Below are positions 1 to 22,281 of a DNA stretch of 64,000 nucleotides, one piece after another (the stretch's first letter is position 1; the number at the start of each line of letters is the position of its first letter). Both the position numbers and the translations under genes were made by a program. The notes beneath the pieces are model-generated. The model did not search any database. It worked only from the letters and a program-made list of their open reading frames with translations, and was not told the origin of the DNA. Origin of the DNA: Iphione sp. A-MEVVRFRX5 (taxonomy: Eukaryota); the NCBI GenBank assembly GCA_976226885.1, contig OZ320315.1:48856001-48920000 (forward strand), read 5' to 3'.

Positions 1-2181
1 ATACGGATTAATTCCACCATACAAATGAGGATAAGCCATATACTCTCCATTTGCGTCATAAATTAAACTCAATGGCATATTGTATTCACCCGGAGCAATA
101 TCGAAAAACAAGTCCCCAGTATGAGCATCTAGAAGACTTTGCATTTGCAAATCCTTCTCAGTGACATCAACTTCAGAGAAGTTATCTTCATCACTATCGC
201 TATCATCATTGTCAAGTTCCTTAGTATTACAACTTTCGCTGTAACAACGCTCATTGGCTGCTTCATCTACAGATTCAGCTGTCAAACTTGGTCCATCGTT
301 CATCAATGCATTCACTGTTTGCGTTAACCAATCGTAATCAATGATAACATTATCTTCTTTATACAAAGGACTATTCTTCACTAACCACTCTAGAGCCTTC
401 AACACATTAACAGGGCGCACATTGAATTGCCTGTATGCATGCTTGTTTGAAAGTTTTCTCTTCAACCGAACACATGTAGTACCTGCCGTATTTATGTACC
501 TCGGCAACTGAACAACAGTATCCTCTACACGTGCCAAAACATTCACAACAGGTCCCTTCAAACTGTATTGAAAACCACGGGGTAAATAACGTATTTGCAT
601 AAATGCAAGACGCCGAGCTACAAGACGTGCCTCATCGACAGTAATTTGTAACTCATGGGGAACAGTTGGCAATATAAATCCGTTCATGTAACAGATACGA
701 GGTAAACGACGGTCACTAATCGCTTTGGAACATGTTTGACAAATATATTTGCATTCATTTTGAGACTTACCACCTACTACATGTTGAATATGATAGTAAA
801 TTTCTGAAGTGACTTCCCGAACACTATGAATAAACCACACCTGGCTACACATGCAACAACAATAATGTGGCCCTTCTTCAATGTTAAGAAAAAAACTCTT
901 GATACACTTGTCTAACTCATTTGCGGTTGAATCTGTATCAGAAGAAACAACATTACCATTTGTTTTCTTGCGAACTTTTGCATTCTGTGAATTAACTACC
1001 CTGATAGACCGCTTCTGCTTCCTACTCTTTTCACTACTACAGTTTCCAATTATTTGATTTAAAATGTCGGCTTTATCATTGACCACATTAGTTTTACCAC
1101 AAACAGCCTTTTTTCTACCTTTGGTATGTTGTAACGCTACTAAGTTAGGTACAAGCATGCCATCACTGTTTATCAACACACTTCTGCAGTTCGGTTCTTT
1201 CAGAGACTTACTTTTCTTGTCACTTCTAGTTGTACTACACGTGTTCTTCCTTTCAGATTGTAGCCCCGTTTTTTCTTGACTGTTACTACTCTTTTGGACA
1301 AATTCTTTTACACAAGCACTTCCATTTCTGCTTTTCTTCTGATCGGATTTAGTCTTACTAAACATCTGAGAAATGCCAGTTGTTTTGATAAAGCTAGAAA
1401 TATTACCGTTCCGTTCCGTTAACCTGTTTCCTTGTACCGATTCACTTACATTAGATCTACATGACTTTTCTGTTGTATGAAACATATCCTTACCTACCCC
1501 ACACCTCAAATTCTCTATCACTTCCATAGCAATGAACCGGTTGGGATAAATAGAATTTATATCTACAAATATTTCACAGAACGTATCAGACAATCCAGTT
1601 TGGACCATATGCACCACAGAAATTTCATACTGGAATTGTTGTGAACTATAATATAACTTTTCTATATGACCAATAAGTTCATAAAAATCTTCAAAACATA
1701 TGTGAACAGCTGTACCTTCTGCCGACGGAAAACCTTTTTTAGAACGCGCATGAGAATCAAACATATAGTAAACGCCAGTTCTGCAATATACTGCAATAGA
1801 CAAATGCTGTGCAACAAATATACAGAACGGACTAATCGAGAATGCTTTCACAAACGCAAAATATATGGAATCGCCCTTTGGTATGTGTACACCAACAAAA
1901 CATTTCACCACATCAAAAAAAATCTTTCTACTATTTACAATCAATAATTGTGGCAACTCACAAGGAGTCAATTGCAAAGCAGTTATTCTCCGGCGAATTT
2001 GTGTATACAGAAAATCGCCAAAGTCGAGGACATCGTCTACATGTCTACTATTTACAATGCCATTACAAAAAACGAACACATAACACAAACAGCCGGCAGC
2101 AATAGCGGTACATTGATTGCCACGACCACTGTGATTATATACACTACTATTTTGACTCCGAGAACCTTGTAAAACTTTCAT
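1..2181 (-). CDS. Helentron RepHel polyprotein, N-terminal ~727 codons (peptidase C76-like domain, low-complexity linker, Cys-rich + DUF6570 region, start of Rep); 3'-partial
   Basis: Hand translation is open from ATG 2181 to base 1: MKVLQGSRSQ...GRGNQCTAIA...DDVLDFGDFLY...YYMFDSHARSKKGFPSAEGTA; CIKSFFLNIEEGPHYCCCMCSQMWF; YICQTC; FMQIRYLPRGFQYSLKGPVVNV...LPR...VRLKRKL...NVRPVNVLKALEWL; FDIAPGEYNMPLSLIYDANGEYMAYPHLYGG. Probably missing from the ORF track because it has no stop in the window. Confidence 0.9.
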   Translation of the reverse strand, partial: MKVLQGSRSQNSSVYNHSGRGNQCTAIAAGCLCYVFVFCNGIVNSRHVDDVLDFGDFLYTQIRRRITALQLTPCELPQLLIVNSRKIFFDVVKCFVGVHIPKGDSIYFAFVKAFSISPFCIFVAQHLSIAVYCRTGVYYMFDSHARSKKGFPSAEGTAVHICFEDFYELIGHIEKLYYSSQQFQYEISVVHMVQTGLSDTFCEIFVDINSIYPNRFIAMEVIENLRCGVGKDMFHTTEKSCRSNVSESVQGNRLTERNGNISSFIKTTGISQMFSKTKSDQKKSRNGSACVKEFVQKSSNSQEKTGLQSERKNTCSTTRSDKKSKSLKEPNCRSVLINSDGMLVPNLVALQHTKGRKKAVCGKTNVVNDKADILNQIIGNCSSEKSRKQKRSIRVVNSQNAKVRKKTNGNVVSSDTDSTANELDKCIKSFFLNIEEGPHYCCCMCSQVWFIHSVREVTSEIYYHIQHVVGGKSQNECKYICQTCSKAISDRRLPRICYMNGFILPTVPHELQITVDEARLVARRLAFMQIRYLPRGFQYSLKGPVVNVLARVEDTVVQLPRYINTAGTTCVRLKRKLSNKHAYRQFNVRPVNVLKALEWLVKNSPLYKEDNVIIDYDWLTQTVNALMNDGPSLTAESVDEAANERCYSESCNTKELDNDDSDSDEDNFSEVDVTEKDLQMQSLLDAHTGDLFFDIAPGEYNMPLSLIYDANGEYMAYPHLYGGINPY

Positions 2182-5100
2182 TGTAAAGTACAGCTGTTCT
2201 TTTTTCAACACTTTATATTCAATGTCAAAAACTTAATACTTTCCCATTATACCACATAAAAGAACAATAACTTTTCTCTATAATTTTATCCGTCCTATTA
2301 TTTGGTTATCGTCTCACTGATAGCACACCAACACAGTCTTTGATTGAAAAAAGCCTACATTTACAAATCAACAATAAACTAATAAACTTGCGAACAACCA
2401 ACCTTTTCACATAAAATTGTTTCACAACATGTGGTTTTACTCTGACATAACCCCAAACTATACTTATTTAAATACAACGCGTACACAACAATATCAACTT
2501 TTGACGTCGCAGTAACATTAACCTCCTTCACATTACACACCTATCCTCTTCTTTCTGAATTGCTCTCCACAAACCCAACCAACTATAACACGAACACTAC
2601 CGACCTCGGCTGCCACCATGAACAATGCGGACTCTGTGCTAACACCCACCCTTTTTATATAAAACCTACTTGTCTAATCTTCAGTTGCCGACACAAAAAA
2701 TGTTCATCAATACAAACTCTCTTGTTGTTGTAGAAACATCCCCCTATGTGTCATACCGACCACAACGCCATAAAGTAAAAAGACCAGAACATCAAAGTAC
2801 TCTACTATCTGTCACGGAAGTCTTACACTATAAAAACCGACACAGCGTACAACGCATAAATAAAAACATAAACTTAAAAGCGGCTAGGAATCCACAAACC
2901 CAAACCGACCGGAACCAATCCCTACCATCTTTTGAAAAACATTTAAAAACTATTTTTGTTATTCCAATACCCACATACTTCGTTAAAAATGATAAAAACT
3001 AATACCAAATTAACAAACAAGTCTACAAAATCTTCTATAACAGTTTATTGACTAAATTCGTATACGCTTCCACCAATGCTTAATTTGCTTTTTACTTCTT
3101 CTAATTGCTTTATTAGCGTTCAGGTTTTCTTCATTCAAACTATTAGCATTCCTTTTAAGAATAGTGCACAGTAACACTAAACATTAAACACGAAAATATT
3201 AAACTATATCTATTAAAACAGTTACGTTTGACAGCGAAACCCTAAAATTTTGCAATTAAACTTATACTTTAACCATACTTATAAATAGTTGATAAATTCA
3301 CACCGATTCACTCTAAAAGATATTCAACTACACACACTCTTTCCATTCTTATACATAATGTTTGAATTATTAAAACACAAAACTTATATAGTTAAAAACA
3401 GATATATTCCCACCCTCTTTTAAGTATTCAGTCATCACACTACGCTCTTACATATCGTTTATGTGATTGGTCAGTTTTGAACCAATCACAGTTCACGAAC
3501 ATCTTTGCACACGGTACTGTTCCGCTCTGGTCGTTTGGACCACGCCTACCACTCTCTACTTACTTGTTCGCAGCATTTCTCGCCGAGTACCACTACCACA
3601 TACTAATTGTACTATTTACTACCACAGTCGTATACAAGAATCTTACAATAAGCCATTAACGGTTTATCACCTTGGCTTCTATACTAATATGGACATCCGA
3701 CGAGTTGTATGGAAACCTAAACAGATACTTACCAAAGACACAGGTATGTACTAATTACCCGCAAACTACACAGTATACAATGTTCCAAGTACTATTTCTG
3801 CGAACTTCCAAACTACACTCATATAAACACATCGTCCAATATTTTCAATGCCGTTCGCATCAGCCGCTACAACGCCGTAGTCTTCACACATATCGCCTTA
3901 CACACTTAGACAGAACACAACGAACACACGTACAACCAGTAAAGATATTCTTATCAGCAAACAATACTCACTTTATATAAACCATACATTCAATTCGTAT
4001 ATGATTACTTCTTCCATATTTCCAATGTATTCCACTTATACGTAATGCTTCATCTCGGACTATATCTTTGTTGATTTAATTCTCTTTCAGCCACTTGGAC
4101 TACAAACGATGTGCCTCTTCTGCCCACCAGTCAGGACCCACAAACTATTACTACTTGTAAGTATGGACACTACAGCAATCTTTAAAGGAAACTTCTTTAG
4201 ATTTCTAAACATATATCAGTCTTAGTCTTTATTATTACAACTGTGTCCTCATAGCACTCCACTGAACTCTATCCACCTATTAACTTTTGTTGGTTCAGAA
4301 GACCCTATGCTACAGTATTACCTTAGCATATACAACACCTCCAACCAAAACAATTTGTGCCCAATTATTTCCGTCCTTCACATGTTTCCCGGCCTCACCT
4401 CTTTCCTATCCCCAAGAATGCCTGCTGCTACTATCCCCTAACCCTAAAGCACTATACCCGCGTGTGAGAACCATCTACACCCGCACCGCTAAAAGTAAGA
4501 TACAGCATATCCCGCCGAAGCAGTTGCCTAAGTTATACCCATGTATATACCCAAATGTACGGACCTTCCACACCTACCAAGTTGTCAGTAAACTACGACA
4601 TGTCCCACCGAAGTAGTTACCAAATTATATTCATATATTTCTGTTTTGATACTAAGTCAGCCTATAGATAACACAATTGGCGCATCATCAACAGAGGACC
4701 CCAAAACAAGCAACCTTAACCACAATACCACTCTGATGACTCCCTTAGTCTCTCTCTCTACCTACCATGACTCATACCAAACCACAGTTGTTTAATTTTA
4801 ATATTAACTAAAAAAAAATGTTCAATAAGTCATCGTCTTCCTCAGATACTTAGCTTTCATTTGATATGACACAACACTGTAGTAATATAAGTCCCTTTCC
4901 AGCATTCACACCCTTGCCGCTACTGCCGCCGCGAACACGCAGAAAAAAACAGCCAGGAAAAAGTTAGAAACAAAGTTTAAACAAAAGCAGACTAAACCTG
5001 AAAAAGTCATCGGCCTGTAGTCGCGCCAGCTACAGTAGAATTTAGCGGCGCATATATCTGGACGCAACCTGATGCGAACACAGTCGACCTGACATGCTAC

Positions 5101-5227
5101 CATGTCTTCACAAACACTTCATAACTATACAAATAACCAATAATACTCCTCATATTGTTCTAGTGCCTACCGCAAATAAATGAACGCCATTCTACAACCT
5201 CAAACTAATTTTGCACTTTACTTCCAG

Positions 5228-5520
5228 TTCAACCAGTTCCGATCCCGGCTGACGCAATCCAGAATGTACTAGCAGAACTCAGCTATCTTCGAACGATCAC
5301 GTTGAATCTACAGAGTGAAAACAAGTTACTCCAACAGCAACTACACCAGGCAAATGATGAAATCGTACACTGTCGTAACGCAATAAGAAGCTTGCAACAT
5401 GACCAAAGCATGACAAAACAGTCTTTCGGAAACTTCCACTTGCAAGTTGAGGCTCTAGTTCGCCATCAAAGCGTTGTCGATACCCACATTAATACGATCA
5501 TTTGTTCGCAAACTGAATAA
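5228..5520 (+). CDS. Isolated coiled-coil-coding exon-like ORF inside the Helentron
   Basis: Acceptor ttttgcactttacttccag at 5227, then VQPVPIPADAIQNVLAELSYLRTITLNLQSENKLLQQQLHQANDEIVHCRNAIRSLQHDQ... with heptad-like pattern; stop at 5520. Confidence 0.4.
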
Positions 5521-7847
5521 AAATGTTCGACAGACAATAATCTACTTTAACAATATGTTCTTCAACGACAATAAACTTTTAAATACTGTTGTTTTTAACG
5601 TCGCATGAACAAAACTAATTAACGCAACCAGTTAAACCAAAACTTACGTCATGCCACCTTCAGTTCAATAAAATGTTTCCAGAAATCACTTGTCATGTTG
5701 TTCTTACTGCCACTAGTATTGATGTTAAACTATATGAACTATCTAGATTTGCTACTAGTTGCGGAACCTACAATGGACTATTGATTTTTGTTATAACCTG
5801 GCATTAGACATTAAAGATGTCCTAATTTTCCGCCACTACGAATCAGAGATATGAGTAACTCCTCTACTGCTAAATGCTACAAAACAAAATAACAGAAAAA
5901 AAAAGAACATAAAGCCCACCCACTATCCTGGTTCTCCAACGCAATCGAATAAGAGTATCAATAAAACTCCTCTACTGCTTATTGTTCAGAAAACAACAAA
6001 AAACAACAAATAGAAAAATAATATAGTGAACCCGACACACTAAACAAACAAACAGATGGTGAAAACTGACTTTTCACTTATGTGGTACTACAATGCTCAT
6101 TATCTTTTTATATGTATCACTTTGTATATTAATGTTTAAAATTAAAGTCAATTTAACCATTCTACTGGTAGTGAACTTAAATACGAAAACTACAAATAAC
6201 AATATATGTGCAAACATTTCTTCTGTCACCCAATGTACCCCACCATAATTATGCACATCTCATTCACGACTCATATAGATCTATTTTTAAATATCCCCAT
6301 GTTAATTACTATTATTGCTTTACGCATTTGCACTTAAGTCCTGTTTTCGACAATACCTAAGAAGCACACAAAGATGTTGTGTTCACTTTTTTTCCAAAAC
6401 TGTTCCATTTTTATCTACACTTACACACAACCACACTAACCAGCGCACTTTAACCAGAACGTTATTCTTCCTATCACACTTTTTCTTGCAATTATTTCAC
6501 TTAAACCGAACTTTTGCTGACCCTATATGTCACTCAACTTCAAACAATACTAAATCAATACCAGGAAATAAGTTTAACGACGCATTTACCCGTATCCACC
6601 ATTTGCATAAACTTAAATCTTTGCAACAACCAACTAGTAACTTGCACTTAATCTACAACCGCGTGATTAATCAAGTACCTCGGCGCCATGGACTAGACAC
6701 ACCACCGTCTTTCACTGATAGTCACTTTTCAATACCAATATCGCCACCTATTAATTACACAACGCTTTTGATTATCTAACGCCAGAACCCTTCCGAAACA
6801 ACATCACAAAACCACACATCCTTCTTATCAGCAACCTATGTCGCTCACTTCAACGTCAACCACCACTATCCCATTTGAATTACACTCACAACGCCTCTTC
6901 CTAACACATTGTAGTTCTTACCAGCGCCGCGACGTCACTGCCTTCTATCAACAAAACATGTTCTTCCTAACATTTCGACAAGCTACTGCTATCACTGACC
7001 TAAACCCAACTGCACGCCATATTATGCAACTTTTTACGACAGACTCGATTTTATATCCAACAAACGTCTTAAGCATAGCAGTAGAGATAGAGATAGCATT
7101 TTACAACACTAGATCATGCTTCAATGATCACGGACAGTAGAGATACACCACACTGTGTAGAGGAAGTGCCACATATATCAGCTCCCATAGCGGAACTACT
7201 TTTGGGCAACGTTTTATATAGGTAGTGTAATAAAACTTCAGTCAACGCTTTAAACAACGACTGCTATCACTGACACTTTAACGACCGCCGACTTTATCAA
7301 TTCGCCCGCCTTATCGCTAGGGACCTGTTGCGCAATGTTTCTGACGGTGCCGTGATGTCCCCAGGCCGCGCCCTTCCTGCCGCCTACTCTTCCATCAACA
7401 CGGTATAGCTACAACCGCTACCTCAAATAACAAAGGCAACCGCTCGATACCACCGTGCAGATACACCAATCACGACCACGGGTATGCCCGCACGTGACAA
7501 ACCAGTCCACTCATTTGCATATCCGCAAGACCTGCCTACATCCGCATATCTTTTACTATAAATACCTGGCGCATCCATACCACCCACAACACTTCGTTTC
7601 CGACAGCCACCATCGCTTCATTTGCTACAAGCCTACACTCGAACGTTAACTTCAGACCGCTGTGAGAAGAAGTCACCGCCTCACTCACTATCACGCTGTC
7701 GCAACAAATTAACAAGTAAGTAATTCGTGTACATACAACAACTCGACACACTATACGACCACCATCATAAGATTGACGGAAATTTCATTTTAATACACCA
7801 ACTTAAATACTAGTCAATTACGATCACATTATACAATAAGAACACAC

Positions 7848-8069
7848 ACAGGGGGTGTCAACTATTTTGGTGAAACGTTATTGATGATTTTAGTTCAGCG
7901 CTAAACGTTATTTGCCCTTCTCAATTGTGGTGAAACGTTATTGAACAAATACTGGTGAAGCATTATCAGGGAATTATTTCATGGTGAAGCATAATCTGAC
8001 CTTTCTTTAAGCACTCGGCTCATCTGAATTCTTGGTGAAACGTTATTGAGCCCCCCTGACCCCCCCTAT
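7848..8069. mobile_element. MITE with 13-bp imperfect TIRs and 7-bp target duplication
   Basis: TIRs acagggggtgtca / tgaccccccctat (11/13 match); aacacac at 7841-7847 and 8070-8076; internal repeats of tggtgaaacgttattga. Confidence 0.6.
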
Positions 8070-9110
8070 AACACACTTGTCGCACAATACAAACTCTACA
8101 AACCATGACTACATTCCGAACATATGCAAAAACAATAACAACGTACATGTTGTTCTGATAGAACCTTTACACTACCTATATAACACGTTACCTAACTGTG
8201 AAGCATGGAAAAAACATCATATGTGTATGACAATCTTCCTGGTCCTCATAATTAAGTGATGTAAATCTTTTGGAATATCACTGCTCTATGTTTCAAAGTA
8301 AAACCGCAATGTAAATAACAACATAAATTTCTACACTACTTTTCAGTAACATGTTATCCCTTACCGATTTGTACATATAGAGCCTATACTTTAACCATAT
8401 AAACAACTAGACATCATAAGTGTAATTAATCCATGTACCGAACACACTTATAATTACACAATTGACCACTTTTTTTTCCCGGGATTACAACCACTCACCT
8501 GACACGTAGCACTGACCTGTAAATACTCAGTCAACTTAAACCTCAACTGAATATAGTTCTACAATACTCATCACTTCACTAACGCTACGCTTTGTAAGTT
8601 TCTTCCACACATATACTACCCTGTTAGGAAAACTTGGCCAAACAATCCGCCCGATGGACACTTTCACTGCCACTTTTTAACTTCCGTATACCATTTGTTA
8701 TAGAACATTTTATCAACTTTTCAACTTCCTGTTCCAACAAATTTACATATCTGTGCACTTTGTTTAAACCCTACAGCTGTCAACTCAGCGGTTGACCATA
8801 CATACCTAATAGACAACTATAAGGACATCGGCTATCCCAACATCCACCATAGGAACGCCTTAACTCCGGTAAGTGCCAAACATGTACACTTGATATTCAC
8901 TATTAACACTTGCAAAATACAACCTAACCTACGCTACTTACATACAACTTCCGCCTTCAGAAATTTCACCATGGTCTACTTTTTCCAACCCAGTTTTCCA
9001 ACTTCTAAATTGCAACTACAACCTTTACGTTGACCTTTACAAACTACAAATACGCATATATATGATTAAACCCTGTCAATTGAGTCCTCTTTTCTACACA
9101 CACTACTTAC

Positions 9111-9574
9111 GGTAACCGGTCAACTGGGCCCGTAAGTCAATTGGGCCCGTCAACTGGGCCCCTAGTCGGCGGTGGTGGTGGCGGCAGCGGCGAGAGTGTC
9201 GCACCGCCGGCCCGTAATGGGCGGTGGTGACGGCCGCGGCAACAACCACTGTGTTGTCGCACTACCGGCCCGTAGTCGGCGTCGGCGGCCACAGTGTTCA
9301 AACTCCATCTAGTGCATTCTGTTGGTAATATATGTCTATATGTGAGACCCCTACACCCCCCTTATTTCTGTAAAAAATCTTGACTGAAAAGGGTGGGGGG
9401 AGACCCCCCGCACCACCCCCCCTTTTTTGTAAAGAATCGTGACTGGAAAAAATGTCAACTGACATGAGGGGGAATTGAACCTGTATATCTGGCACAAGTC
9501 CCCTGGTGGACCGAATCGCTTACGGGCCCAATTGACGAGCCCAATTAACTTACGGGCCCAGTTGACCAGGAATC
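9111..9574. mobile_element. MITE with 8-bp TSD (hAT/P-like)
   Basis: TIRs ggtaaccggtcaactgggcccgtaagtcaattggg / cccaattaacttacgggcccagttgaccaggaatc; TSD ctacttac at 9103-9110 and 9575-9582; GC-rich, breaking the surrounding strand bias. Confidence 0.85.
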
Positions 9575-10510
9575 CTACTTACTAGTGTCCCGTTACATAC
9601 CACATCTTCCCTAACAATGTTGTCATAGATTATTGAAATCGGCAACCCAACCACTTCTAACTAACACTATATGAACAATCAGCTGTAAGCTAATTTTTAC
9701 CAATGTTACTATCATCATGAAACCTATTGTTGAACTATATAGTTATATCCTCAATCTACATCATTAGTTCAGTAAATTATGCGAAATGTAACATACCATA
9801 TTAATCTAGTTTAAATGTTGCACATATGAACACTAGCACCGATATTCTGCATTTGCCACTGTAACTCTCCATGCCTGATGAACGAAACAAAATGAATTAA
9901 TAATTAATGCCACATCCCAAACCCCGCCGGGACTCACTACCACCACCAAACACCTTAAATGTAAAAACCAACTACACACTTGTCCTTTGCTTGCCTCCCT
10001 AATCTACGTACACTTCCACTTATCCATCATAAATTACGCAGAAATGGAACCATCGTTAACAACAACTTTTCTCCTACAGACATTCACGGACAACACATCG
10101 CCCCGGACACCATCACAAGTTTACATGTAGTAACCTTTTTCCAACTCAACAACAACTTCAGGTAAGTTATAAGCACACTCTCTTGTTTTCCACATTGATA
10201 AAATTGTCACAGAACATTGTGTTTACCGACTATCTTACTGATACATTGTTCACTTACCAACTTTTGTGTACACTATACCGACTACAATAACTCATTGACC
10301 ATTCATGAAATTTTAGCACTACTCTACTGAAAGCGCCAACAACCTAAAACACACATTTTTCTTTACAGAACACCGAGACAACGAAACACCTCATAATAAC
10401 TTCAACACTCTACACCGGTTTCGTCATTAACTTCTGGCCTTCTGTACCAAGTATGGTTAATACCAATCTCAGGCACCTGACACTCTGAGATGCACTTCGG
10501 CCATACTTAC

Positions 10511-11132
10511 CTACGCGACACATGTCCGGACAATTCTACTGACTGAAACATCTGCTCCGCGCCCGACAAGACATCAACCCCAAGACTACAACCATCTTTC
10601 CGCCGTAACTCCTTAAGAAACCCAAAACATCTTTGGTAAATTACTTCACGTAGTACTGTATATTCTGTGGACCTCCATGTGTAAGATCATGTCAGAGCCA
10701 TGACTACTATGCGGACACTGAAATGAACACACACTTTTCATCCCAACTTAGTGAATTGATTTAAACCTGACTCCTTTCCAGATTAGTATTATTTCACAAC
10801 ACACATTATTGTCACATTAGGTATAGTATTAGTAAATACTCTGTACCTCTTGTCTTGTTATCACACTCTCACGTCTCGAACATTATGTATTACCGAGTTC
10901 GACTTTATACTCTTAACTAACACGTATTTCATTTCAGAAGTGTTTTCCCTGCACCAGAACACTCAATCCATTTACTTCGATTCTTCCATTGAGAACGTGT
11001 GAAAAGTACTTATCGTAAACTTACACTGCTACCTTCCTTCAGCCACTTCAGACTGCACTCGACACAGACTCTATAACCTTGTAAACTGTTTTGTGCAGCA
11101 TATTTTTTCACCAGTTCTTCTTTGCAAAGAAT
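10511..11132 (-). pseudogene. Decayed RING-finger-like cargo exons
   Basis: Exon 11132-11025 (ag...gtaagt, 108 nt) ILCKEELVKKYAAQNSLQGYRVCVECSLKWLKEGSS joins in phase 0 to an exon from 10717 (ttcatttcag) CPHSSHG...; several zinc ligands are substituted and the second exon is frame-disrupted. Confidence 0.35.
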
Positions 11133-11529
11133 CTAGCACCTAAACTATTCCTCTTTCCGTCTACTTCTTCAAGAACCAACCTCATCCATACATTCTTCTC
11201 TGCGTACAAAAACATTGACTTTTCTTCCTTATTACTTACCAAACTTACCTATTGTATCCACCGGTACTTCTACCAAGGTCATCAGAAATCGACACCAAAC
11301 ATTGTGTATTTATCGCATTAACTACAAACCATTAACCTACCCACCTAAGTTACAAACCTTGCCTCTAAATTAAACTTTAAGAACTTCTTTGAATTCAAAT
11401 CCATAATGTTTTCCGCCATCATTCGGTCAAATACCAACACATGTGCCTCTATTTCTTTCACCAATTATGTAAATAACTATCTAATGTTTCCGCCAATAAC
11501 ATAAGTCACCGCCACACTTATTGCAACTC

Positions 11530-13330
11530 AAGGTTAGTCTTGTTGACCATTGAATGAATTCCTTTGTATTGTTCAGGTTCCTCACTGCTCAGTACCAATG
11601 CTTCTTTGATTAGTACCTTCTTCTCCCAAGACTATACTAATCCAATACCGCTTCCTTGTCTTGCTTCCACAGCTCTTCGTACTCATTTTCATTTACTGAA
11701 GTCCTTATCCCTTGTTTCACTTTTAAAAGCCACTAAAACTACATAGTAAAAACCAACTTACACTTAACAAGTGTAATTCCGTCTCACCAACCTTCATTAG
11801 ACAATTGGCCAAATTTTACATGACACTTTCCAGTTGAACTTAATGGAATTCTGTCAATTTCTTCATCTCCATTACAACCTTCTTCTCGTCCAGTTCTTGA
11901 TTCATTCCTGCATGGATTTTCCCTTATATTGTTCAAGTTCCTAAGTATAAATGCCAATGCTTCCTTGATCAATGCCTTCTTCAGACTATCTCCTAAATTC
12001 CCTACCTCTACCGAATGTTATGCTCCTGCATAAATTTTTCCCTTACATTGTTCAAGTTCCTAAGTATCAATGCCAATGCTTCTTTGATCAATGCCTTCTT
12101 CAGACTATCTCCTAAATTCCCTACCTCTACAGAATGCTATAATAATCCAACTCACATTCTTGGGCTACCTTCACAGCTATTTTTTCTCTCATGAATACAC
12201 TCAATCCTTATCCCTTAGTTCACTTTTAGGAAAAAACTAAAACTATATCATATACTTCATATTACACTAGTCAGGAAAATACAATCCCAATTTCCTTCAT
12301 ACGCTGAAGCCTAGATTTTACCTGACACATTCCAGTGCACGTTACTAGTATTATGCGAGTTGAACAATATTCATTGCAACCTTCTTCTCGACCGGTTCTT
12401 AATCTCTAATTCTTTCACTAAAATCCTTGTCCCCTTGGTTCACTTTTAAATCGGAACTAAACTACATCGTGTACTCAACTTAACCTTGTCAGATATAATA
12501 CCGTCCCACTTACCTTCGTTACACTATGCCTCAGTTATCACTACAGTCCCTACATTAACTCGTAGATAACACAACTAAAACTATATGGTATACTCCAGCT
12601 TACACGTGCCAAACGAAACCACTCACTTCCCTTCATTACGCATCTAGACTCCATTTTGTGTTTTGGTCCCTTCTTTCACTTTTACAATAACTAAAACTAT
12701 ATCGTGTACTCAAAGTTACACTTATCCAATGTACCACCGTCCCACCTCCCTTAATTACACTAAAACTTCCATCTCCGTGGTATCCGAATTACACTTATCA
12801 AACGAACACCATCCCACCTCCCTTCATTACACTAAAACTTACATCTTGCTGTCGCTTTCTAGTACCAGTTACTAGAAAGCGACAATTCATTCATGCCCAT
12901 TGCAACTTCCTTCTGATCCTGTTCTTGTCATACTCCTAAGCATTTATGCACTATGTCTTTCGCCTCGTACTACCACATTCCTTTTATACTACTACGCTTA
13001 TTGCACTCTATTACGCTGTAGACTTGGTTATACAATTTCATCCTTTGGTTCACGTTTCCATAAAAAACTCATTACCATATACCCCTTCCTACACTTGTCA
13101 AATTAAATATCATCCCACTTTCTTTCATTAAGCCTTTACACTCCATTTTACGTTTTCATCCCTTGGTTCACTTTTAGCAAAGATGTACTATATTATGAAC
13201 TCCAGCTTACACTTATCAGGTGTACTACTGTCCCACCTACCTTTATTACACAAATGGTCATATTTTGCTTAATACTTTTACTAATATAAATGGTGTTCTG
13301 CCAGTTCATTCATATCCATTACAGCCTTCT
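11530..13330 (-). repeat. Degenerate ~200-300-bp tandemly repeated exon/intron-like units
   Basis: Recurring ccttcttctcgtcc-type and tcccttggttcactttt motifs; minus strand reads e.g. GDSLKKALIKEALAFILRNLNNIRE / RTGREEGCN...CQ|gtaaaa. Confidence 0.55.
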
Positions 13331-13646
13331 TCTCGTCCTGAACAACTTCGTGCCTACACTTCGTTCGAAATTCCACAAATTATATAAAATATCATTGTCT
13401 TCATTTGAATTGCATTTAACTTGCCCTCCTCACCTCATTTCTATACTACACTAGAAACACCAGCAAACACCTTAAAACCCATAAAGTATAATAATACAGA
13501 AACCTTTTGTCCTCACAACAAAACTACTTAACATACAATATCCTTGCATAACCTCTATTTCCTACCTATCAACTGCTGTATTCAGTATACATACCATGAA
13601 ACATACTTTTTACTACATGAAACATACAGCACACGACCTATTCCAC

Positions 13647-14023
13647 AATTATATCTACTACTTACACATCCTCGCACACTCCCTCGATTCGAACAGAATG
13701 TGTGCGATGAGTTCGACAAAACTCGAACATGTGACACAGTAACTATTCTACAACACTAAACATCCATACACACAACATGTCCCTCAACAATTATATCTAC
13801 TGCTTACACATCCTCGCACACTCCCTCGATTCGAACAGGAATATGTGCGATGAGTTCGACAAAACTCGAACATGTGACACAGTAACTATTCTACAACACT
13901 AAACATCCATACACACAACATGTCCCTCAATTATATCTGCTGCTTACACATCCTCGCACACTCCCTACATTGGAACAAGAATGTGTGCGATGAGTTCGAC
14001 AAAACTCAAACATGTGACACAGT
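13647..14023. repeat. ~141-bp tandem repeat, ~2.7 copies
   Basis: Units start at 13647, 13789 and 13929 (aattatatct...gatgagttcgacaaaactcgaacatgtgacacagt). Confidence 0.9.
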
Positions 14024-14139
14024 GAAGCGTAACTATTTTATCACGACCGACTGCCTTCGTAGTATATATTACCAGGTGACTTTGTGTACATACCTTGTTT
14101 TAAAAGTTGTTTTCCAATGTAGTACACCATAAATACACA

Positions 14140-14680
14140 AATACACTTAAGAGAGGTACCCATAACCATTCTCCTACTAAACTTTGTAACATACAAGTTC
14201 TTCTTGAACAATAATTACCACTGTTTTTCGTGGTTTCTCCTGGTAAATCTTCAGATATGTATCGTATGTTTTACATGAATCTTTTAGCCGATAGTAAAAT
14301 CTTTCTTTGACAACAAACCCCTAACCCACCGCACTCCCTAGATAAAAACAAAAAAGTATCCAATGAGTTAGACACAACTACAACATGTAACAAAAACAAA
14401 CCGATACTGGTTAATTAAGCAAACTGCCAGTTATTGGTGTACATACCATCTCTTATACTATTTGTTCGCCAACAGTAACACCCCAAAAACTTACACACAT
14501 ATACTTAAACAGGTCTACCCATAACCATCTTCCTACTAAACTTTCTAACGAACAAATTCTTCTTCACCACATATATTTCCGCTGTTTTTCATGGTTTCTC
14601 TTGGTAGATTTTCACATATATGTCATGTGTACTACACCAGACTGTTGGGCCAATGGTAAATCTTTCATTGACAAAACCCG
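14140..14680. repeat. Diverged direct duplication (~180 bp, ~360-bp spacing)
   Basis: tacccataaccat...cctactaaacttt...ggtttctc...aaatctttc at ~14140-14320 and ~14500-14680. Confidence 0.7.
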
Positions 14681-15479
14681 GAACCCACAAACACAAACAC
14701 TTAACACATAAGTACCCATAAAATAAACACAATCCGCCTTCCACAAGTTGATTCTTCCACATGAGAGTATTCTTCTTCTTTATACCAACAACTACTCCGA
14801 ATCAAAGTCTGCTGCCCCCTCTTTCTGAGCAAGTCACTCCTCCACATGAATGTCTGCAGCTCCTTTTTCAGCCGACTCTTCCACATTATGGTCTACGTCC
14901 ATATGTTCTACCTCTTTGTGACCAACTGACTCCTCCACATCGATGTCTGCTCCTTCTATTTTAGCCGACTCTTCCACAACGTGGTCCTTCTTTGACTTCA
15001 GTAATAATTCTTCGTCCCTGATATAATACAGCAAGTCAAAAAGACGCCATGTATGCAAATTGTCCGACTCACATAGTTAAGAAACAATTACCTAAAAATT
15101 GAAACTTTCAAAGTTAGACGTCCCATTGTATATACAGTACAGTGCAAACTCACTTAATGCTTACAATCTTTCTGTCAACGTACTATGAGTTGTTGGCATC
15201 CTGTACTCCTTTTTCAAAAACTCTTCCACTCTGTCACATTGTGGTCTTCTTCTTGTGAAACTCTACAAAACAAAAGTTGTCAAGGTTCAAAATCCCATTG
15301 TATTAAATGGAAAATGTTAGCATACTGCTCCTGGTATGGTCTTCTACTTGTAAAAGCTCTCGAAAGTAAAATTGTCAAGGTTGAAAGTCCCATTGGATGT
15401 AAAGTACAGTGCAATTAACGAATTGCATGCAGTCGTCCAATGTTGGGACCTTTCCTTCTATTTCAGTCCGTCCAACTGA

Positions 15480-16250
15480 CTTCCACTTGACTTCCTGTCC
15501 ACTGCTCCTTTTCAGCAAACTGGTCCACTCCTCCACATTGTGGTCTTCTTCTTGTAAAAACTCTACAATGAGCGTACTTGTCAACAAGTCTCATTGTATG
15601 TGCAATAGAGTGCAGCAAACTAAATGCATGCAGTCTTCCAATGTTGGGACCTCTCCTTCTACTTCTTAATACTCCCTATATATTTACTATATCTTCATGT
15701 ACAACGTTAGAAACACTGTACAATACAAAAACTTCATTGACTTCCTGTCCACTGCTCCTTTTCAGCAAACTGGTCCACTCCTCCACATTGTGGTCTTCTT
15801 CTTGTAAAAACTCTACAATGAGCATAGTTGTCAACATTAGAAGTCCCATTGTATGTGCAATAGAGTGCAGCAAACTAAATGCATGCAGTCTTCCAATGTT
15901 GGGACCTCTCCTTCTACTTCTTAATACTCTCTATATATTTACTATATCTTCATGTACAACGTTAGAAACACTATACAATACAAAAACTTCATTGACTTCC
16001 TGTCCACTGCTCCTTTTCAGCAAACTGGTCCACTCCTCCACATTGTGGTCTTATTCTTGTAAAAACTCTACAATGAGCGTAGTTGTTAACATTAGGGGTC
16101 CCATTGTATGTGCAATAGAGTCCAGCAACTAAATGCATGCAGTCTTCCAATGTTGGGACCTCTCCTTCTACTTCTTAATACTCTCTATATATTTACTATA
16201 TCTTCATGTACAACGTTAGAAACACTGTACAATACAAAAACTTCATTCAA
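15480..16250. repeat. ~255-bp tandem repeat, ~3 copies, with older copies nearby
   Basis: ttgacttcctgtccactgctccttttcagcaaactggtcc recurs at ~15487, ~15736 and ~15991; minus strand reads QEEDHNVEEWTSLLKRSSGQEV, and related HxVEE motifs occur at 14760-15060. Confidence 0.9.
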
Positions 16251-17959
16251 CTTTGAACAAAACTAAACCCACTTAAAATTACTTCAAGTCAATGACCAAC
16301 GCTTACACACCCGCACGGACAACAAGGTATATCTATCATTTTTTATTGATTCGACTTGAGCACCAACTGTTGCTACACTTCCACCTACCATCCCATTTCC
16401 AAACTGGAACCCAATTCCTGTCTTACACACTATTGCACTAAGCTGCTACATTGCTTCCTATAAGATTTCCCTCTGAATTTATATATAAATATATACAAAG
16501 ACTACTATTCCAACTCATTACTAGCGACGCGACTACCCACAATTTGAGTTTGGCCTTTGCTCCACCAAATTCATACAAACCTATTTCAAGTGAGAGTAGC
16601 TTCAGGTTACCGTTAACCTTACTCCACAAACTCCTCCTTCACTTTTTGTTTCTAGTGAAACCCCTCAAACACAATACATACACAACATTGAAAACCACAC
16701 CAAATAACCTTAACTGTAACATCACTTAGGTACTCTATGCCTAACACACACGAACACCTCACGCCTTTCTTATCACCTTCTGAAAATGTTCGCCAGACTC
16801 CTTTACTCCCTCTCCTTACACTTTATCTTATATACTAACCTATGCAACGCTGTAATTTTGTACACTTTGATTCATGCAAAACAACACTACCCTTCACCGA
16901 CCGACCTATTGAACATCACCCGTCCCACTAATAACACTCTCCACTTGTATCAGCTTATAGTATTTAATCACTTTACTACAACTTCCTGTGTATTTACTCT
17001 ATTCTGAAAAACGTTTTGCAAAGACTGTACAATACAAAAACATTCCTTCAACGTGAAAACAGTAACCTCACTTGTTATTACTAACTAAACGCGCCCCACC
17101 TTATAAAAATACTCTAGACTTCAAGAAGCTTCTAAAACTGTTCAATATACTTAATACTCCCTGAATATTTAGTATATCGTCATATACATCTTTGAATGCA
17201 CTGTACAATTCAAAATTCATTCAATGGTGAACAAAACTAAGCTCACTTAAAACTTAGTTGAACTACGATGAACAACGATTACACAATGTAGTATCCAAAT
17301 TTAGTACAACTTCCTAGCAAGTATCTAGTACACCAAGAACTACCAAATACTGTTTTCAGTTTTTGCGAGGTTGAAAAACACATAGAAACACTGCATAGGT
17401 GGTGTCATGTAAAATATCACACACAACACCTTGCCAACAAACTTTTCTACCGATTGTAAATATATACTATATGTTTGCGGTACTCTATGCTCCGTTTACT
17501 GAGTCTCTTATATTGTTATTTCATAAGGACGATATGTACATACGATTCATTCAATGAGTTACAACACTATCCTTCCTTAACAATGGTTTGGTGCAATACG
17601 CCTGACCCTGAGACCACTTTCCTGTTTCAGCACCTTCTATTACCTGTTCACAACCTCGCGTACTCCCACTAGACAAGCTCTATTTTATACTATTACATTA
17701 CTATCAAGTTATCCCCCAAACCCACACCTCGGTTAATACATATAAAACTAAATTGACGCCTGGCGCTACCGCCAACCAATGACGTACACTGAACCGCACC
17801 TACTGGTACTTTATCACATATTGAACATAACCAACCCTGTTTCAATGTTGGACTGAATACCTACTGAAGTTTCTATTCCCGGTGTTGTCAAATGTGGTGT
17901 TTCGCTTGACGCGTTGCATATATGTGCTTTGCTACTTATTGCCAAACAATTGTATTACA

Positions 17960-18700
17960 TCTTGATTTGTTCTTTGTACTACGTCTTACTTTAAGTTCTG
18001 TATCAACTGTACACAACTATGTCACCAACATCTACTACTGTATACGGTTTTTGGTATGTAAGAGCATTCTAATTACCTCAATAATTCGTTTTACTGAATA
18101 AAAACCACATATCTTCCACTTCATCTTTACTCAGTTTTATGTAAACCTTAGAAATACGCCATAGTACTTTGTACTACGCCTTAGGCCTACAAAAAAAAGT
18201 TCTGTGTTTCCGGTAACAGGCTAAAAAAATACAGGGTCGGTCGGTACATCACATATTTTTTTTTTCTTTATTTTTCACTGTAAAAGAACGCTGAAAGCAA
18301 CAGATGTGTATGGTAATATTACTTATACTGGTTAGATTTTTAAGAAAACATATGTCAAATGGAAGCCAGAAAACTAAAGAACAATTTGGAGTATAGAACA
18401 TGTCTCTATCATTATTCATGCCAAAGTTATTCAAAAAACAAGAAAAAAAAAAAATATCACAATAGAGTCTAATGAAGGGTCGGTCGGGTTACCGGAAACA
18501 CAGATATTTTTTGTTTAGGCCTTACTTTAAATTCTGTATCGACTATACACAACTGTGTCACCAACATCTACTACTGTATACGTTTTTTTGTATGTAAAAC
18601 CATTCTCATAACCTCAATAATTCGTTTCTCTGAATAAAAACCACATATCTTCCACTTCATCGTTACTCAGTTTTATGTAAACCTTAGAAATACGCCATAG
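17960..18700. repeat. ~210-bp tandem duplication whose second copy carries a MITE
   Basis: ctttgtactacg(t/c)c tta ctttaa(g/a)ttctgtatc...aaccttagaaatacgccatagtac occurs twice. Confidence 0.85.
18184..18521. mobile_element. PIF/Harbinger-type MITE (TTA TSD)
   Basis: TIRs ggcctacaaaaaaaagttctgtgtttccggtaac / gttaccggaaacacagatattttttgtttaggcc; TTA at 18181-18183 and 18522-18524; empty site with a single TTA at 17986-17988 in the sister duplicate. Confidence 0.92.
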
Positions 18701-19605
18701 TACCATATGTCATTCCGATCTAAAACTAATACGACTTGTAGCTCTTACTTTGCCTACTACAGCTACTTCTATCTATTACCATTCCTGCGCCTACGCGAAT
18801 TTAGAAGGAACTTTACCACTACGTTTTCCAGAACAAAAAGGCGCACTATCTGCAATTTTCAAAACATCTATTTGAATATTACCATTAGTAGTAAAACCAA
18901 ACCAAATCACTTGAAAAAAACTAAAACACAAATCGTATATAACTTATTGCATTATGCAACTAGCTGAGAAAGAATAGAATTTCCAAAATTCCGTTACGAA
19001 TTCCTTCTATAACTTAAAGATAAACTAAACACTATTTCTTCCAAAACAAAGTTTATTGCTGTGAAACCTGAATCCGCACCATACCTCCGACGATCGCATG
19101 ACTGAAGCTGCTACTGATGACTACATTTCCTGCCGTCTCGATTAGATGTCCTCACACCATCATCTTCCACGTGCTATAATCTTTCTTGTATACACTGGTT
19201 GCAACTCTAAACATATTGTTGACTTCTCACCGAAAAACCAATCCCTTCAATGTTAATACACTACACATTTACACTTACTCCCAACCTAACGCTTACTTGA
19301 CTTTTATATTAACCTCATAATCTAGTTATCTGCAATGAAAACCCATACTGACTTCATTGTAGTAAACTTCCAATTATTGATATCTGCCACATAACCTATA
19401 TATTTACATCATACCAATTTTACAAAACACCAAAACAAAACGTATATGTAACCACCAAACCATTAGTCTCGAACCTAATTTACATTCTTGTTCCTTAACA
19501 CCATGATCCCTTATCGATAACGCCTTGAGTGATTGACAAATTCTCTCCACTAAACCCCAAAACTCACACAAAATTGAAGCCGACTTATGCATTATTCTGA
19601 TAATA

Positions 19606-19691
19606 CTAGACTCGAACAATCTTCAATTACGTTAAGTAATGTTCCATACTAAACTCGAACAATGTTCAATTACATTAAGTGATGTTCCATA
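19606..19691. repeat. 43-bp tandem duplication
   Basis: cta(g/a)actcgaacaat(c/g)ttcaattac(g/a)ttaagt(a/g)atgttccata x2. Confidence 0.85.
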
Positions 19692-19949
19692 CATTCCATT
19701 TACAGACTAATACGTACCGCTTACAACTACACTAAACAAACAACAAATACCGCTCACCAGGAGCGCACAACATCTGCACTCCCACAAAACCGCCCAGGCA
19801 ACACTTCAACCCCTCGTGGGGGCATTACGAAAGATTACATGACAAATCGTAACCAAAAGCTTAGTCGTACTTGGAGGCCCAGCCTCCATGCCGGCGCGAA
19901 GATCAAACAACAGGCTCCTCCCCCTTTTTCGCGTTTTCCCCGCTCTAGT

Positions 19950-20010
19950 AATGGAGGTCACACCATCTGCTACCGCACATGGTAAACGCAGATGTGACCT
20001 CCATTGATAA
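19950..20010 (-). other. Nested hairpin, candidate Helentron 5' terminus (subTIR + partner IR)
   Basis: aatggaggtcaca (19950-19962) / tgtgacctccatt (19993-20005) with inner catctgc/gcagatg and tacc/ggta pairs; coincides with the end of the strand-biased region; the minus strand begins TTATC-AATGGAGGTCACA. Confidence 0.5.
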
Positions 20011-22281
20011 TGACTCTAAAGGAACACTAGAAATACATAGATACATACATCAAATAAGAGTTTTTCCTTTGATTTCAATAGAAAAAGCAATGATAATCTC
20101 ATATACGTCCACGCTAACTGCCACCATGCCATTATGGCATGATTCGATCGGTGGCCGTCTGGACTGGGTTAACATACTTATTTGGAAGGATGACTCTTTA
20201 TATTATGTATGCAAGTGTGCGTTTATATGTAAGCATATATATCTGTGAACGCAATCTGCAGCATGTTTAATCCTTTTCGAGGCTGGGTAGTGTGCCTATC
20301 ATCACACATCACCATCCATCACAACTCACTTTTGTTACGTTTATGGCCTTTCATAGGGCCATCTCCACAGCTGATACCAACGGTAAAAGGGGAGTTTTTT
20401 AAACAGAAACAGAATCCGCTTAGACTAGACTGATCCCACAGAAAATCTGCGGAAATGGTTAGTGTAGTGCTCAAACTTAACTTTCTTTTAACATCATACC
20501 ATCTGAATAGGCTGCATCAGAATCTTTCAGACCCACAAATTCTGTATAGCCCCTAGATAAGTGAGCTTCTACTGTATCACAAAGTAGTTAACCAAAACAG
20601 CTGTTGAGCATAACACTCAATAAGAACATGTACTGACTAAAGCTGAATTGATACTTAAATATTGACCAAGACCTCCTGGCTCAAATAGCTACTACTACGT
20701 CATGATGGCTTCTGCAGACATAACTGGGACATAACCTTCTTGACAAGAATGATCAGTACTACATAAGTGCCTCTTCACACAAGAGACAGATTTGCATATA
20801 GTTTACAATCGCAACAGTCATTAATAGTACTTTAAGAGTACGGAAGCTAGTGACCTCTGATTTACAGTGACCCCTCGGTATTCAAAGAGGTCAGCTACAT
20901 GCCATTGCTTCCTCAATATAGAGGAGGTGAGGCCCTAAGATGCTATACACTGTCTTGACTCTTCACTGAAAATGAAAACCCTTTAGTAGTGCAACACCTC
21001 GCTATAGCAGGCGGTTTCACTAGACACCACTCAAGTTGGTCGACACCAGGAAACATAACACGGGCAGATGTGGTACCTCGTTTATAAAATTACTTTTTGA
21101 GGAATAAAATCATCAAACTACTGTCAACGTACTCAAGCATGGATCAACGGGAAAGACAGTTACAGGGGGGTCTGTTCACACGAATTCACACTTCTGTATG
21201 TTAATATGAAAATCAGACCAACAGAGAAAGGTGCCCCCCAAGGTCCACGCTGCTATAAATGTCCCTGAGATTGAGACGTGCATACAGAGTTCCCATGTCA
21301 AACAGTGAAGTCACATTACATGCTCTTTCCATACCTCAATACTGTGTATTGTTTCAGTGCGACATAAGAGATTAAAACTATAGAGGGTGACTGTAGATAT
21401 AAACAGAACTGACAAAAGTAGATAATTCCCTCTTTCTTCTTTTCCTCTTTCTCTTGCTATATGTAAAAGGTGTCAAGTGCCCAGCTCGTCATTTACAGGT
21501 TGAAGTATGCACAACACCCAAGTCTGCATTAATTCAGGCATGGTTTTTGAGTACACGGAGGTACCTTCGTCTGAACTGCTGTCACGCCGTGCAATGGAAG
21601 AAACATATACATGACCTGAAAGGATGGAACAAATGCCGAACGACTAATGTTTGGCTAGAGAAATTGATATTTAACCGGGTTTCTCCACTGGGGAAGCACG
21701 GCCATGACACGATCTGTCCTTAATAAGACACATAATGCGAACTTAAGACGAATTTCAATTGACATTTTGCCCATACCCACTTAAATGCGATGGTGAACTT
21801 AAACCATGATGTCTTAATAAGGTACCCACTGATCAAAATATGTTCTCTCCTGCCACTAACGGAAGAAAGTGTAAAAGACTGTTGTAATAGGGTGGGGACA
21901 TTTTCGCAATAGGTACCTCTCCAAAACCTCACTTTGCGTCTCTTCATTTGTATGGTACAGGCATCAGGTTATAATACTGGTCTCCTGGGCACGGCCCCGA
22001 AGTGTACTACAAACTACATTTACAGATCCGTCATGGTGCATATGAAGAACAAGAACAGCAGCATAGCTGAGCTCGGTTATTCACATGACTGTTACTTTAC
22101 GCACAGTAACAATCTGAGATTACGTCATTGCAAACTGCATATTCCTGAAACCTTCCATGAACTTAAGCATATTTTATTTACTGAAATCACACTGCCCTCC
22201 ATGTCATCGATACGATGTATCTTCTACTATAGTTGACTAATCCTACACGAAGACTGCCATTGCCTGAAGTGACATCTACCG

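Follow-up and report, generated by a model that had tools for sequence, protein, structure and literature searches.

The 5′ part of a probable giant (~80 kb) autonomous Helentron in the genome of Iphione sp.

We analysed a 64,000-nt stretch (the window) of the Iphione sp. A-MEVVRFRX5 genome (assembly GCA_976226885.1, contig OZ320315.1, positions 48,856,001-48,920,000 of the forward strand). From its sequence, positions 1-20010 probably belong to a giant (~80 kb) autonomous Helentron, a rolling-circle transposon of the HLE2 group, and make up the 5′ part of one of its copies. All genome counts refer to this single 1.18-Gb assembly, whose contigs are labelled here C1, C4, C11, C13 and C15, OZ320315.1 being C4. 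The sense strand of the Helentron is the minus strand of the window, and negative window positions lie to the left of the window on C4. Read from its 5′ side, the element begins with a terminus (an invariant T, two variable bases, and a subterminal inverted repeat, or subTIR, forming a hairpin with an adjacent inverted repeat) and a non-coding arm of ~21 kb. Then come a single 2119-aa gene, RepHel, that combines a protease, a Rep HUH nuclease, a PIF1 helicase and an apurinic/apyrimidinic (AP)-type endonuclease, and a small spliced gene for a probable OB-fold protein. A further ~48 kb of DNA, mostly unread, leads to a cognate 3′ terminus ~80 kb from the 5′ end. The parts of this layout that fall within the window, and the flank next to them, are the following.

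1-2181, minus strand: first 727 codons of the RepHel open reading frame (ORF), an intact 2119-aa ORF with no internal stop that ends outside the window, at -4178
325-711, minus strand: DUF6570 (aa 491-619), a domain that usually accompanies Helitron-type Rep on its N-terminal side (Pfam, 1.7e-18)
1735-2163, minus strand: N-terminal cysteine-protease-like domain (aa 7-149) of the peptidase C76/herpes tegument type (Pfam Herpes_teg_N, E 4e-7, 30.3 bits, cut-off 25)
2182-19949, minus strand: 5′ arm, ~17.8 kb here and 21.1-21.2 kb in the sibling copies, with no supported ORF and C-depleted on the sense strand (evidence: skew and a RepHel-linked piece)
19950-20005, minus strand: 5′ terminal hairpin, in which the 5′ subTIR pairs with the complementary inverted repeat next to it
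19988-20007, minus strand: 5′ subTIR block, TCAATGGAGGTCACATCTGC on the sense strand
20008-20010, minus strand: 5′ boundary, with the invariant T at 20010 and then two variable bases rich in A/T
20011-20300, no strand: host DNA next to the element, with no relation to the corresponding flanks of the three siblings

The original prediction placed a Helentron-type RepHel ORF at 2181, running out of the window, and extension to the left bore this out. The full-length protein matches Helitron_like_N (Pfam, 1e-28, aa 783-936) and, downstream of Rep in the same ORF, PIF1 (Pfam, 2.4e-22, aa 1422-1638). Rep motif 2 reads FYR-VEFQHRGSPHVH (aa 919-933), with the HUH motif in the form HVH at aa 931-933, and the two catalytic tyrosines, Y1108 and Y1112, lie in YIVSY (aa 1108-1112). 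In the Helentron-diagnostic version of Rep motif 2, (F/Y)xR stands just before (V/I)ExQxRG-S-PHxH, with S and not L between G and P (PMC4067079). The motif found here matches that signature, which tells Helentrons from Helitrons. The marks of canonical Helitrons (HLE1), i.e. 5′ TC, 3′ CTRR, insertion between A and T and the lack of an endonuclease, are likewise not those of this element, which has subTIR-type termini, an endonuclease domain and S instead of L in Rep motif 2. The endonuclease domain occupies the C-terminal 240 aa: Pfam finds Exo_endo_phos there (E 1.2e-4), and all ten best ESM Atlas clusters are Exo_endo_phos too (top score 0.96). A single-sequence structure model of this domain was unusable (predicted local distance difference test score 35). 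The RepHel ORF is intact in 4/4 genomic copies. Since codon differences between lineages amount to 22-25 synonymous vs 19-23 non-synonymous, they indicate that RepHel was under purifying selection while the lineages diverged.

The plus strand had been described as G-poor up to ~19950, the G-poor stretch stopping at a nested hairpin, and both observations held. GC skew of the plus strand is between -0.18 and -0.50 in every 1-kb window from 1 to 20000, the weaker dips coinciding with nested miniature inverted-repeat transposable elements (MITEs), and it returns to ~-0.1 to 0 beyond 20000. The hairpin at 19950-20005, folded as DNA, reaches -21 kcal/mol (z = -6.3), and 0/200 shuffles fold as well. 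Read from 20010, the minus strand is T-TA-TCAATGGAGGTCACA. The two variable boundary bases differ even between copies that are 99.85% identical. The block TCAATGG begins 3 nt after the invariant T and AATGGAGGTCAC 5 nt after it. The pairing in the hairpin co-varies with the 3′ subTIR between families (CAC/GTG vs CAT/ATG), with C/T-to-G/A co-variation at all three sites, i.e. the 5′ subTIR, the neighbouring repeat and the 3′ subTIR.

That this is a definable terminus, as had been claimed, is confirmed by a sharp end common to more than 1,000 non-autonomous copies. Searching the genome across ~20010, the check proposed with the prediction, we found copies that end sharply there. The 601-bp probe used across the boundary returned 1129 candidates sharing the terminal 150 bp at 88-98% identity, and all scored matches stop at query positions 308-321, that is, window 20007-20020. 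Among the four giant copies homology ends at 20007-20010 and does not pass 20010. The common sequence of 16 short and 4 long copies begins at TCAATGGAGG, a start that fits the published rule that the Helentron subTIR lies 2-4 nt from the 5′ terminus, and the bases on its 5′ side (5′ flanks only) are T at -3 in 20/20, T at -2 in 12/20, and A or T at -1 in 19/20. Helentrons are described as inserting into a TT dinucleotide or a T-rich target, with no target duplication. The 5′ 20-mer has 128 exact genomic copies, none in the reversed control, and exactly one in each giant copy. The short non-autonomous partners (L013-L028), of the kind called HINEs, contain ~126-bp internal tandem repeats, are GC-rich (~55%) and show no strand skew.

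The ~18 kb between the RepHel start codon and the hairpin had been attributed to the same element, and genomic copy numbers uphold this. We queried the genome with a MITE-free piece of the arm (10050-11500, 1.45 kb), since one MITE had flooded the results of a 17.5-kb query. The piece has exactly four matches, each in a RepHel-linked copy; the 2-20 kb region never turned up without RepHel. No long sense-strand ORF was found in the arm. ORFs on its plus strand were considered as genes and rejected, being low-complexity by-products of the G-poor strand, and tblastx of the 500-bp repeats of the arm gave no preferred frame and no frame-specific conservation. Compared with the C13 copy, positions 11200-19100 differ by ~0.2-1.4% per 500-bp bin (mostly ≤0.6%) and positions 2200-11100 by 0.7-3.6%; the low divergence of the former could reflect constraint, gene conversion or chance.

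At 99% identity, the genome contains RepHel DNA in four places, on C4 (the window copy), C1, C13 and C15. Comparing 40 kb around each sibling, we found the four copies collinear leftward from 20010 over 28-35 kb, at pairwise identities of 98.6-99.85% (highest for C13 vs C15), with unrelated 5′ flanks. Beyond these four, the genome has no further copy of the stretch 33.4-34.9 kb from the 5′ end. After ~35 kb per copy the analysis consists of coordinate-level searches and short motif patterns instead of aligned sequence.

The point at which the element ends was defined on four small members of the family, in which a subTIR that complements the 5′ one is followed by a short hairpin and then by a tail with CTTGT(T) as its last bases. 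The 16-mer GTGACCTCCATTTGCA has 29 matches in 1.18 Gb and 0 in the control, and on the sense strand it lies at nearly the same distance from the 5′ end in each giant copy, the residual differences between copies matching indels already seen. In 4/4 copies the 3′ ends are identical over 40 nt: the 3′ subTIR GTGACCTCCATT, complementary to the 5′ AATGGAGGTCAC, a stem-loop with a 6-bp stem (TGCAGC-TTCC-GCTGCA), and a 12-nt tail, CGGGTATCTTGT, ending in CTTGT. Complementary subTIRs of 12-15 bp and a short stem-loop 8-35 bp from the 3′ terminus are features expected of Helentrons, and both are present here. Positions and sizes are as follows.

C1:32100377: CTTGT tail; 16-mer 80,490 bp from the 5′ end; end-to-end size 80,515 bp
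C13:26379968: CTTGT tail; 16-mer 79,878 bp from the 5′ end; end-to-end size 79,903 bp
C15:19375994: CTTGT tail; 16-mer 80,001 bp from the 5′ end; end-to-end size 80,026 bp
C4:48769878 (window copy): CTTGT tail; 16-mer 106,108 bp from the 5′ end (76,989 bp net of a nested element); end-to-end size 77,009 bp net

The probability that a 29-copy motif lands by accident no more than 1 kb from where it is expected, in three further copies, is ~1e-14, and chance cannot have placed it there. Inside the four spans there is no other exact 5′ 20-mer and no other GTGACC-type 3′ motif, the 35 kb of aligned element contains no 3′ subTIR-like motif, and the commoner hairpin pattern, checked on C1 only, has no match inside the giant span. 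Elsewhere in the genome, a 3.6-kb element pairs the same 5′ and 3′ motifs. The leftward extension that had been recommended yielded a Rep with HUH motif and two tyrosines, a PIF1 helicase and, downstream, a matching 3′ subTIR with a stem-loop. The expectation of an element well over 20 kb was right in direction and too low in extent, the size being at least 35 kb by alignment and ~80 kb as indicated by the position of the cognate 3′ end.

Two other leads to the 3′ end were discarded. At window -6514 both the skew and the homology to the three siblings stop, but the siblings run on together and the element resumes on C4 29 kb further left, the break being a nested insertion. The common HINE pattern of 3′ subTIR plus hairpin has 849 genome matches and missed the giant ends, whose tail differs.

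Two further 3′ ends were noted. A fifth 3′ terminus on the plus strand of C11 (G000:C11:7579139-7579178) is one base off the 40-nt end of the giant, has no exact 5′ partner within 100 kb upstream, and may be a truncated copy or a derived HINE. On C1 a second 3′ end, of the common HINE type, stands at 32096532 (minus strand), 3.9 kb beyond the 3′ end of the giant and on the same strand.

Downstream of RepHel lies a spliced gene whose first exon resembles OB-fold single-stranded DNA-binding protein/RPA clusters (ESM Atlas 0.90-0.92). We call its product a probable OB-fold single-stranded DNA (ssDNA)-binding protein, and only probable because an exon-by-exon Pfam search gave nothing significant (the joined model was not searched).

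The window copy is the most decayed of the four, with a substitution in the helicase (D1538N), a 2.6-kb deletion and a 29-kb insertion of the Harbinger type. Its Walker B motif reads NEVSM instead of the DEVSM of the three siblings (L032:5068-5070, minus strand, outside the window), a change that likely disables the helicase in an otherwise open frame. The breakpoint of the deletion, private to this copy, is at 19750-19751 (no strand), where the siblings retain 2.6 kb that is just as poor in C. The insertion, also private, spans 29,121 bp from window -35633 to -6513 (C4:48820367-48849487; L048, L031, L030, L029) and sits in the last intron of the OB-fold gene. Its 17-nt terminal inverted repeats have one mismatch (GGCTGC[T/G]TTTCCATGTA) and its target duplication is TAA; it contains tandem repeats of 216 bp and a DDE_Tnp_4 ORF (L031:2628-3989), next to which lies a MADF-like ORF. 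These features make it a PIF/Harbinger-type element, of unusually large size for that superfamily, and an Rfam search of it returned nothing.

Other repeats and insertions in the arm, none with an assigned strand, are listed below. A member of the TTACACTACCTATATAA-type family (L033:5061-5278) also lies in the last intron of the OB-fold gene, in 4/4 copies.

4852-5058: 207-bp segment private to the window copy, without inverted ends
7202-8195: nested ~1-kb element whose inverted ends are of the TTACACTACCTATATAA type (2,659 genomic candidates for a related end)
9118-9567: nested element of 450 bp with 47-nt inverted repeats, at a local skew dip
11906-12140, 13645-14023 and 14818-14986: smaller tandem arrays
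15487-16247: tandem array of three 255-bp repeat units
18181-18525: nested MITE of 345 bp with terminal inverted repeats (more than 8,400 genomic candidates at 86-95% identity), which swamps long DNA queries that include it

The G-poor plus strand corresponds to a loss of C on the sense strand, where the body of the element has ~12-14% C vs 22-26% G. Four-fold degenerate sites of RepHel share this composition (C 71, G 135, T 317, A 229). We polarised the changes on the C1, C13 and C15 branches in the four-copy alignment and counted 32 C>T among 3526 C vs 16 G>A among 6795 G (odds ratio 3.9, p = 5e-6), an excess that persists outside CpG. This roughly four-fold recent excess of C>T on the sense strand matches the skew. 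No APOBEC-like context was found for the C loss, trinucleotide ratios fitting a context-free depletion. Skew is near nil in HINE bodies (-0.06) and positive in the other RepHel families of the genome (+0.05 to +0.09), and within the giant the C depletion fades ~32 kb from the 5′ end. Candidate causes are long single-stranded exposure of a very long transposed strand and transcription-linked deamination of the non-template strand. One could go further and see in the element a still-active, virus-sized (~80 kb) rolling-circle replicon with tens of kb of cargo genes, its C loss recording unusually long ssDNA periods, for example during extrachromosomal rolling-circle replication of a very long template. 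What suggests this is the absence of the skew from short HINEs and other Helentron families, together with the ~4-fold recent C>T excess on the transposed strand. We think it unlikely; if true, it would place the element between a transposon and an ssDNA replicon.

Following known Helitron behaviour rather than data on this element, Rep would nick the sense strand at the 5′ end, the helicase would peel that strand off until the 3′ subTIR and hairpin signal termination, and the freed strand would move to a T-rich target. Because the first cognate terminator is 80 kb away, the whole 80 kb would move as one unit. The distal half could then be the element's own cargo, or DNA captured by read-through when an earlier terminator was lost, and the fading of the skew after ~32 kb favours capture.

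Several observations weigh against an ~80-kb autonomous Helentron. The loss of homology among the four copies just past CTTGT is inferred, from the position and identity of the 3′ terminus. The C depletion, strong nearer the 5′ end, weakens ~32 kb from it, and the distal part may therefore not have belonged to the original element. The endonuclease match, at 22.3 bits, is under the curated Pfam cut-off of 24.5, and the OB-fold gene lacks a significant Pfam match. The fading skew and the unseen 3′ limit of homology would also suit a smaller mobile element, consisting only of the C-depleted core of ~32-35 kb, with the DNA up to 80 kb copied by segmental duplication or as the edge of a larger repeated unit. 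This is highly improbable in our view: in each of the four copies the similarity ends precisely at the Helentron 5′ terminus, with T at -3, a pattern that three independent segmental duplications would not produce. Nor does the 35 kb read contain a 3′ subTIR-like motif at which such a core could end, the next cognate terminator being identical in the four copies at a constant distance; and the 33.4-34.9 kb stretch is found in them alone.

Closer to an even chance, and just short of it, is an 80-kb unit that arose as a read-through composite, in which a ~32-kb Helentron lost or bypassed its terminator, continued replicating across ~48 kb of host sequence as far as a related element's 3′ end, and then transposed at least three times, the distal half being captured. 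The composition does shift at ~32 kb, terminator bypass is the accepted capture route of Helitrons (PMC6431247), and the tail CGGGTATCTTGT is unlike the common HINE tail, being present only in the four copies and at the one C11 site. Yet the distal DNA examined has no separate donor locus, occurring only in the four copies and always within the element, and no remnant of an inner terminator is visible. Such an origin refines rather than contradicts the ~80-kb Helentron, since the moving unit stays ~80 kb. The high similarity of the copies (99.85% for C13 vs C15) could raise the suspicion that the assembler misplaced or duplicated one element; we give this almost no credence, as each copy has private substitutions and indels and its own unique flank on a separate contig of 98-179 Mb, and there is a private nested insertion too.

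The kind of element is known; what is new is its size, its autonomy at such a size and the strand specificity of its mutation pattern. An upper limit of ~40 kb is assumed for rolling-circle transposons, the largest known examples being non-autonomous and carrying gene fragments. Recent transposition of ~80 kb by an autonomous Helentron, on at least three occasions, would raise that limit two-fold; it would also show that an HUH nuclease and a helicase are able to mobilise a segment, genes and all, as long as a large virus genome. With a measurable C>T excess on one strand in four dated copies, the element would also be a natural system for strand-specific mutation tied to a single-stranded transposition intermediate.

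Helentrons and HINE/DINE-1 elements (Thomas, Vadnagara and Pritham, 2014; PMC4067079) resemble the element in most of its architecture: one ORF with Rep, PIF1 and a C-terminal AP endonuclease, the diagnostic Rep motif 2, an accessory OB-fold/RPA-like gene, many HINE partners sharing its termini, and, as far as the 5′ flanks show, T-rich insertion sites. The termini agree as well: a 12-14 bp subTIR starts 3 nt inside the 5′ end and has a complementary inverted repeat next to it, as in DINE-1, and behind the 3′ subTIR comes a short palindrome at 12-13 nt from the end. Unlike typical Helentrons of roughly 10 kb, the element measures ~80 kb (at least 35 kb aligned) and has a 21-kb non-coding 5′ arm, a C76-like N-terminal protease match in Pfam in place of the usual OTU label, and a lineage-specific, strong C depletion of the sense strand.

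According to the HELIANO survey (PMC11417382), no Helitron-like element in Repbase exceeds 39,893 nt and autonomous ones average 9.7 kb; the left end lies at most 27.5 kb from Rep, and the right end at most 16.8 kb from the helicase. For maize, Helitrons of up to 39 kb are on record (PMC6431247). Those elements are also rolling-circle transposons enlarged by DNA between the transposase gene and the termini, with terminator bypass proposed, but the one described here is about twice as long, with ~55 kb from the helicase to the 3′ end against the 16.8-kb maximum. The maize giants carry gene fragments, whereas this element is autonomous, with an intact RepHel. In the literature we found no description of larger Helitron-like elements or of strand skew in them. 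Among giant eukaryotic transposons, Polintons/Mavericks (15-40 kb), Teratorn (~180 kb) and Terminons (~40 kb) (PMC6431247) share the size class and the possible cargo of extra genes. They differ from the present element in using a DDE integrase or a reverse transcriptase and not an HUH Rep and a helicase; no viral hallmark gene was seen here, and a search of viral contigs matched no relative.

The closest parallel for the short partners is Cg_HINE of the oyster (PMC7492417), the partners described here likewise having ~126-bp internal tandem repeats between Helentron ends. In the oyster no autonomous partner has been tied to HINEs, whereas in Iphione the first 150 bp are common to them and to an intact autonomous element, which so supplies a concrete autonomous partner for satellite-carrying HINEs, a link reported as unresolved in oysters (PMC7492417).

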